Positions 34,650 through 36,403 of a DNA stretch of 64,000 nucleotides are shown here, piece after piece. Every line of letters starts with the position of its first letter. The stretch's first letter is position 1. This DNA is from Saccostrea cucullata (taxonomy: Eukaryota), in contig NW_026928448.1 of the NCBI RefSeq assembly GCF_032062105.1, forward strand, positions 124,001 to 188,000. The letters run 5' to 3'. A program made the translations under genes and the position numbers. The notes beneath the pieces are model-generated. The model was not told where the DNA came from. It saw only the letters and a program-made list of their open reading frames with translations, and searched no databases.

Positions 34650-34754
34650 GCAGGCATACTTAGTCAAGTGGATACTTCGTTTAATAAAACATGTGATTTA
34701 CCTCCACAATTGGCACATCCGTGCTGTCTCCACTGACGCAATCCTGCAACTTTT
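34650..34754 (+). ncRNA. Vault-RNA-like Pol III structured RNA, copy 1
   Basis: GCAGG..TAGTCAAGTGGATACTTCG (box A plus the vault-like TACTTCG), hairpin GCAC-ATCC-GTGC, TCCACTGAC..CCTGC closing stem, TTTT, and TATATAAAAA about 30 nt upstream. Confidence 0.55.
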
Positions 34755-35064
34755 ACACCCGCGGGGTGGTGTGTTTAGGGAAGAAAGAGAAATAAAGACG
34801 CTTAAATTTCTTAGAGGGAGGAATTTTGAAAAAAATCAATACCTGACAAAGAAAGATAACTCCTTTCAACAAATGTACTTTCTATATATAAACAAAAACA
34901 TACAAACGTGTGGGATAATACATTTTATTCAGATTTGATTCGTCATTATAATTTCTTAATAAAAAAAACTCTTAAAATAGAAGAAAAAAATAATTCCTAT
35001 CTCTATACTAAGAACATGAAGAATCGCCTTAGACATATATTGTTATTTTACATACGGTAAAATC

Positions 35065-35168
35065 GTGCAGGCGTAGTCGTGTGGATACTTCGTTTAAATG
35101 AAACATTTGACTTACCTTCAAACTCGACGGGAGACCGTTAGCTTCCACTGACGCTTCCCTGCACTTTT
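35065..35168 (+). ncRNA. Vault-RNA-like Pol III structured RNA, copy 2
   Basis: GTGCAGG/CCTGCAC terminal stem, TAGTCGTGTGGATACTTCG, box-B-like CTTCAAACTC, ACGG-GAGA-CCGT GNRA hairpin and a TTTT terminator. Confidence 0.6.
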
Positions 35169-35351
35169 GCACCCGCTCTGACGTCATCATTTTATAGAAT
35201 CCATCGTATCGTAAAAAATTAAAACATATTGCCGAATTAATTGAAAATGTGTTGTCTTATGTAAACAAATCAAGAAAGATAACTTGTGTTTGTGGTTCTC
35301 GTCGACATTCAAGGCAATGTCTCGTTTATCTTCTTTGTACATCTGGACTGC

Positions 35352-35382
<31 letters not shown>

Positions 35383-35514
35383 CGTTTTTACATGACATTG
35401 TATTCTATGATTTGAATTTTGGATATAAATTTTGCATAATTTTTGATTTAGCTATTTGCATGGTATTACGTAATATTCAACATTTACTGTCTATTATCCC
35501 ATTGTATTCTAGTA

Positions 35515-35585
35515 CTGTATACAGGGAAATTTTCGTTTTAATACTAGTATAATTTCTTAAACAAAACTATACTGGGCGAATTTTG
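35515..35585. mobile_element. Truncated MITE (CTGTATACAGGG family)
   Basis: TA|CTGTATACAGGGAAATTTTCG..ACTGGGCGAATTT. Confidence 0.5.
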
Positions 35586-36301
35586 TGTATTTTATATTGT
35601 AATGTTTTGAACATATTTATAAAATTTTTCAATCAAAAGAATTCTTCTCCAAATAAATAACAATATGTCATGCATGTAATACACTAAAATGTAATATTTT
35701 CAAAGTGATGTAAGTGTTTGTTTCTATTATTATCGATAATAAGGTTTCTATAATATCCATTCTTTTACTGGCGCCCTTTTTTTATATTAAATGACTAAAA
35801 ATTCCTGTATTTTTGTGTTCACTTTCAATATAATTTCTTAGAATATATTAATTTCACTAAGAATTCAGTGAAAGAATCATGTACATTGTGTTGTTAATTA
35901 GATTTTATGCATCGTCCATTTTATTTGACGTAAAAATAGCTACAGCTCCAAGAAAAGTGAAATACTTAAAATTTTTAACAATCGACCTCATTCGACTCCA
36001 ACTGAAGACTTTTTTTTAACTCTGTATTTACGGAAATCCATGCTTTAAAAGGAATTTTTATTTTGCTACAAATGTATGATATATTTTATTTATTTATCTA
36101 TTTATTTATTTCAGATTTTTGTGTCACTTCTATTCATTACTTGATGTAATAATTCACTGCTTCATGAAAATCATACAGCATTTTCATTGAAGTCTTGAGA
36201 TGTGTCATTTAATCAATGAAACATGTTATTGAACTTCCATACCGTGTTCACAAGTTCACCATGCTGCTATTTAAATTCCTTATTTTAAATAGTTTGTGAT
36301 T

Positions 36302-36403
36302 ATGCAGGCGTAGTCGTGTGGATACTTCGTACACATAAAAATAATAAAATTGAAAAAACCCGCGGGTAACCGCTCGTCTCTACTGACGCAGCCCTGCATT
36401 TTT
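36302..36403 (+). ncRNA. Vault-RNA-like Pol III structured RNA, copy 3
   Basis: ATGCAGG/CCTGCAT terminal stem, TAGTCGTGTGGATACTTCG, ACCCGCGGG, GCGG-GTAA-CCGC GNRA hairpin and a TTTTT terminator. Confidence 0.6.

Follow-up and report, generated by a model that had tools for sequence, protein, structure and literature searches.

Probable vault RNA genes without box B, followed by a CAYCCGC element, in the oyster Saccostrea cucullata

Vault RNA genes have been defined, and searched for, by an internal box A plus a box B, and the function of vault RNA is a long-standing question. In vertebrates and trypanosomes the RNA is bound to TEP1, with a minority residing in vaults (PMC12547018, PMC9326685). 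Variation around the promoter is on record: the CRE is missing from human vault pseudogenes, and in primates a second box B lies downstream of the vault RNA gene (PMC7058938). In Fasciola, box B of the vault RNA genes is very weak and reduced to about GTTC (PMC8824774). We analysed a window of 64,000 nt from S. cucullata (positions 124,001 to 188,000 of the forward strand of NW_026928448.1, assembly GCF_032062105.1), in which a first-pass annotation had proposed a small cluster of either vault RNA genes or a new Pol III RNA family. No earlier description of oyster vault RNAs, of a full loss of box B or of a downstream element was found in the literature, in which coverage of key vault RNA papers was incomplete.

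The three units were located on the plus strand at 34650–34754, 35065–35168 and 36302–36403 (copies 1 to 3), as first annotated, with copy 1 probably starting at 34649–34650; alignments confirmed that their ends match while their middles diverge. Unit lengths were 102–106 nt (34649–34754 for copy 1), within the 80–150 nt range of vault RNAs, and the T-runs said to close them were present as T4 (34751–34754), T4 (35165–35168) and T5 (36399–36403). Folding, alignment and covariation agreed on a panhandle pairing of the 5' and 3' ends in all three copies: the terminal stem showed the G-C versus A-U change between copies that had been described, and the inner helix paired in each, with a G-U in copy 3. 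Copy 1 had a 5' internal loop 4 nt longer and a terminal stem shorter than those of the other copies. The three 4-bp hairpins also proved to be as claimed, with an ATCC loop in copy 1 (34713–34724) and GNRA loops in copies 2 (GAGA, 35127–35138) and 3 (GTAA, 36362–36373). Folding z-scores of the three copies against shuffles were −3.15, −3.03 and −2.49. The internal hairpins were better than those of a shuffled central domain (p 0–0.0075) and only marginally better than those obtained by shuffling the last 22 nt (p 0.03–0.045). A search of the 64-kb window with a model built from the family yielded no further copies.

Comparison with Rfam supported the vault RNA reading, as the Vault model (RF00006) matched all three copies and the genome encodes both MVP and a TEP1-like, multi-exon gene with TROVE, DUF4062 and NACHT domains. 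Scores were 44.0 bits for copy 2, above the gathering score of 34, 33.8 bits for copy 3 (E 1e-4) and 27.2 bits for copy 1 (E 0.0077), the latter two matches running over the full model, and the orthologs in S. echinata scored 43.7, 36.3 and 31.1 bits. The architecture followed the Vault consensus, namely a terminal stem, an internal loop, a box A helix with one bulged base, UACUUCG, a variable loop and a T-run. The option of a new Pol III RNA family was consequently dropped in favour of the known vault family, and the statement that this class is poorly documented outside deuterostomes had to be trimmed: Lottia, Helobdella and Macrostomum are already in Rfam, and Fasciola genes are published (PMC8824774). 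Because a Lottia vault RNA is already in Rfam, that of the oyster is merely another mollusc member. The alternative of a Y-RNA-like identity failed on sequence and on structure. The Y_RNA model (RF00019) gave no match at E up to 10 in window 33000–38000 and none over its cut-off in the S. cucullata genome, where 52 candidates were scored and real Y RNAs may be missed. The bulged cytosine in the lower stem that forms the Ro60 site (PMC11825425) was absent from the copies; the bulge of the inner helix was G or A, and U in one copy. A tRNA identity was also rejected, the window holding no tRNA gene.

Upstream, the proposed AT/TATA boxes were recovered as TATA-like boxes at −29 to −37, which would by themselves say little in DNA of 30% GC. 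They were found at 34615–34624 for copy 1 (about −35; TATATA also in the S. echinata ortholog), at 35036–35041 for copy 2 (−29) and at 36268–36275 for copy 3 (−34). Inside the units, box A (34661–34671, 35074–35084 and 36311–36321) was followed by UACUUCG, with ATACTTCG at 34672–34679 in copy 1; copy 1 fitted TRGYNNARNNG, and copies 2 and 3 were off at one position. Box B, which had been called weak, must be called absent, since no match with up to one mismatch occurred inside any copy. No exact box B was present within 400 nt of the copies in the window, and the idea that box B had moved, by up to 400 nt and on whichever strand, was rejected for want of a shared position. The vertebrate-like motif seen in copy 3, ACCCGCGGG, is probably a coincidence: the S. 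echinata ortholog has not conserved it, and in copy 3 it makes up an arm of a hairpin. The upstream CRE-like element was absent from all oyster type B genes, the class to which the three copies belong.

The oyster genome was found to hold two types of vault RNA gene. Type A (on contigs C12830, C11155, C4304 and C8780) resembles the vertebrate genes (PMC7058938): an exact box B sits as the T-loop on a T-arm-like hairpin of 5 bp, and a CRE lies at −50. Type B comprises the three genes of the window and six on C20583, with neither box B nor CRE, and one further vault gene, on C22872, lacks box B, CRE and the downstream motif described below. Where type A has the hairpin with box B, the window copies still have a hairpin, capped by a tetraloop, so that the structure appears to have outlived its promoter role. 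A model built from 14 oyster copies matched the genome 20 times, across 7 contigs; every match reached at least 70 bits, leaving nothing from there down to the E 1 limit. These counts are lower bounds, and some copies are probably duplicate haplotypes. Pattern searches of the genome gave at least 12 and 7 matches, clustered, in agreement with a small gene family rather than the hundreds of dispersed copies of a SINE or MITE, which were rejected on copy number and clustering. A type A copy without its 3' strand was seen at about 363521 on C12830 and is intact at C11155:6682–6794, the pair being possibly two haplotypes. From 227704 onward on C20583, the 5' half of a vault RNA is broken off by what is probably an inserted transposon, a sequence containing a long inverted repeat, and about 4 kb before the cluster on that contig there is a Twister-P1 ribozyme-like match (L026:9794–9870, plus strand; 50.7 bits against a cut-off of 67.2).

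In S. echinata, all three copies were recovered one to one, in order and upstream of the same gene. RNA identities were 93, 96 and 88% for copies 1 to 3, compared with 55, 64 and 70% over the 100 nt upstream and 78, 82 and 58% downstream, the baseline for unrelated DNA being 47%. This comparison showed selection on each paralog. About 21 kb from the S. echinata cluster lies a decayed duplicate of copy 1 (L059:20220–20324, minus strand) that has lost UACUUCG and the terminator and has retained CACCCGC, showing the look of an unconstrained copy. Over 17 genes, 93% of cells were paired and 7 of 16 pairs had changed on both sides, against 38–47% for slid controls; although this alignment was model-fitted and covers related genes, a free MAFFT alignment gave the same helices. 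Synteny further out revealed no vault gene in Pinctada or on a short oyster contig; the spliced neighbouring gene was searched by its first coding exon. Taken together, the three copies are likely functional vault RNA paralogs of a subtype without box B.

Directly after each T-run stands RCACCCGC, which the first-pass annotation had not mentioned, with 3 matches in the window against 0.23 expected and none in 100 shuffles. It reads ACACCCGC behind copy 1 (34755–34762, identical in S. echinata), GCACCCGC behind copy 2 (35169–35176) and again ACACCCGC behind copy 3 (36404–36411), where S. echinata has GCATCGGC, one change from CAYCCGC. A CRE palindrome behind the copy 2 element (35179–35186) is not kept in S. 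echinata. Among oyster type B genes, RCACCCGC follows the T-run in nine out of nine, once with a mismatch. When oyster and metagenome contigs were combined, CAYCCGC with up to one mismatch was found in 24 of 28 distinct box-B-less genes and in none of 9 box-B genes, the remaining 4 of the 28 being without it, whereas a CRE was present in 6 of the 9 and in none of the 28. A Fisher test gives p = 6e-6, which is too strong a figure because the genes are related and the evidence amounts to two lineages. The background per 18-nt window was 0.1% for exact matches and 1.9% with one mismatch. Placement was always on the sense side, 1–7 nt after the T-run, with the distance varying by a few bases, and no shared RNA fold of the motif was found in the extended RNAs. 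The 12-mer TTTTRCACCCGC occurred 442 times genome-wide against 128 for the reversed control, a 3.5-fold enrichment on both strands that could fit a DNA site or a repeat. On balance we lean towards CAYCCGC being a DNA site for a sequence-specific factor, which may do what box B and CRE do in type A or may aid termination.

Scanning metagenomes for nothing but the 5' motif brought up 25 contigs, and 19 genes in the 20 contigs scanned passed the Rfam Vault cut-off. A PA-domain exon on one contig is closest, among named relatives, to that of the annelid Lamellibrachia (54%), and two were read as holding Wnt exons. The contigs are evidently animal DNA and their hosts probably annelid; many of these sample series we take to be gutless oligochaete metagenomes. 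No vault gene was found beside the PA-domain gene in other worms including Lamellibrachia. Most of the metagenome vault genes had no box B, a clear TATA box and CATCCGC 2–7 nt after the T-run, and those with box B had no motif, two distinct ones carrying a CRE half-site at −50. One contig (L075) bears two box-B-less vault genes without the downstream motif; its sample has two gene types as well, because box B genes (L065, L069) occur in it. It is plausible, though we would put it just short of even, that an old vault RNA gene class with an undescribed Pol III architecture, namely TATA and box A, no box B and CAYCCGC behind the terminator, is common to molluscs and annelids, and coexists in one genome with a class having CRE, box A and box B.

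RNA over the locus was assessed by mapping four runs from four studies to 34300–39400 (5,101 letters), the reads coming from a relative at 94–96% identity. Copy 2 was covered by one RNA contig (35064–35210) beginning at the predicted 5' end, and copy 1 by another (34659–34814) beginning inside it; both are strand-blind, and contigs cannot show ends. Raw oligo-dT reads had a depth of 0.3–3 from 34642 to about 35325 and zero at 34300–34641. Because both RNA contigs pass the T-run, by 42–60 nt, as do a few raw reads, the downstream motif is at least sometimes in RNA. Copy 3 had no reads in the four runs, which are of low depth and from the relative's RNA. Taken together, these data lend weak support to transcription of copies 1 and 2, unspliced, low-level and with some read-through; the depth is 1–3, and DNA carry-over is possible. 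Short repeated elements at 36629–36667, with a small hairpin, and at 35513–35570 showed very high read depth and loose ends.

Other features of the window include LOC134277611 (37531–43950, plus strand, 898 aa) and, facing it, a gene with a DBB (BCAP/BANK) domain (52522–63200, minus strand), which may be its paralog. On the minus strand, 23803–25032 and 27200–28429 hold a pair of intronless genes for ligand-gated ion channels (nAChR-like, 409 aa), 92% identical to each other, with a further stretch similar to them near 6900–7960. At 10789–13922 (minus strand) a LINE-type element with endonuclease and reverse transcriptase-like frames was recognised by eye from the translation.

We propose that Pol III would start about 30 nt after the TATA box, using the internal box A, and would stop at the T4–T5 run with some read-through. 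A factor at the downstream element might anchor TFIIIC/TFIIIB, or help termination and recycling at the short T-run. The RNA itself folds with a terminal stem of 7 bp, then an internal loop and a box A helix of 9 bp in which a purine is bulged; UACUUCG comes next. Its predicted partner would be the TROVE domain of TEP1, and a minority of the type B RNA would enter MVP vaults.

For the same vault genes, the motif might act in the RNA, the read-through trailer serving as a processing, stability or protein-binding signal. Such a role would suit the extension of both RNA contigs and a few raw reads beyond the T-run, the motif's constant sense orientation, never more than 7 nt from the terminator, and its resemblance to the inner 3' strand, the pairing partner of box A. 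Against this, standard libraries drop RNAs of 100 nt and are biased towards read-through molecules, the trailer brings about no common structure, and the enrichment of TTTTRCACCCGC on both strands is what a DNA site or repeat would give; we regard an RNA-borne signal as rather unlikely. That the copies are silent or dying, members of a SINE/MITE family, or duplicated 5' UTR exons is a very improbable reading that is already largely refuted. The missing box B and CRE recall vertebrate vault pseudogenes, the CRE being lost in the human ones (PMC7058938), and read depth is very low, but in S. echinata every paralog is much better conserved than the DNA upstream of it, the stems carry compensatory changes and the same architecture recurs in distant animals. 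The roughly 20 copies (a lower bound), with their gap below 70 bits, do not resemble a mobile family, and the neighbouring gene joins its 5' exon at 37863 to 39014 and shares no splice junction with the copies.

The protein partner is a separate matter. The Ro60 family is expanded in this genome, with at least 13 long TROVE open frames of 400–580 aa (contigs C6184, C5713, C11075, C15890, C2481, C149, C17905, C16716 and others); 7 of 8 fetched proteins were distinct and 27–64% identical, giving at least 7 paralogs, and two frames scanned for domains consisted of TROVE and vWA_Ro60. No paper on this expansion was found in the literature. It is conceivable, if improbable, that the vault-derived RNAs are now Y-like partners of these proteins and not of TEP1. 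Y RNA genes are likewise not known to have an internal box B, and at least seven distinct Ro60-type proteins coexist with no Y_RNA match over the cut-off among the 52 candidates scored in the genome. The TROVE domain is common to Ro60 and TEP1, and trypanosome vault RNA has been suggested to act in a Y-like way (PMC9326685), but the oyster copies have their bulge in the inner helix, mostly as a purine, and not as the lower-stem cytosine bound by Ro60 (PMC11825425), and a TEP1-like gene is present. Going one step further, a bridge between vault and Y RNA biology in which type B RNAs are the ligands of the expanded Ro60 family would be a long shot.

If the preferred reading of type B as a functional vault RNA subtype holds, its conservation would mean that box B is needed by the promoter and not by the RNA, and searches requiring box B will miss vault RNA genes. 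An oyster with both gene types, about 20 copies, TEP1 and many Ro60 paralogs would be a natural system for testing which TROVE protein reads which RNA. The 7-nt element behind the Pol III terminator, kept across distant animals, offers a small, directly mutable target, and a downstream signal of this kind suggests that these genes might be turned on or off in a manner not yet described.

Compared with Y RNA (RF00019), the oyster copies would likewise give ~100-nt Pol III RNAs with paired ends and a predicted partner protein with a TROVE domain, but they differ in giving no RF00019 match, in having no bulged C in the lower stem and in the presence of box A and UACUUCG. The CACCC box of 7SK (PMC2235858) is upstream, and the worm version of the present element reads CATCCGC, so that it is only a loose lead; nor does the oyster element match the second, downstream box B of primates (PMC7058938). 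The vault RNAs known from other lophotrochozoans (the Rfam entries for Lottia, Helobdella and Macrostomum, and five Fasciola genes; PMC8824774) have the 5' motif, the panhandle and clustering in common with the copies. The available part of the Fasciola report mentions no gene that has lost box B altogether, no coexistence of two promoter types and no element downstream. Vertebrate vtRNA1 and vtRNA2 (RF00006, PMC7058938) are alike in their length of ~100 nt, panhandle, box A followed by UACUUCG, variable central domain, T-run end and small paralog clusters, whereas the oyster copies have no internal box B, no upstream CRE and a CAYCCGC element after the terminator. Within the same oyster genome, type A genes differ from type B in their length of 113–123 nt, in a box B T-loop on a 5-bp stem, in a CRE at −50 and in having no downstream motif, but the two types share the panhandle with its compensatory changes and a hairpin in the same position.
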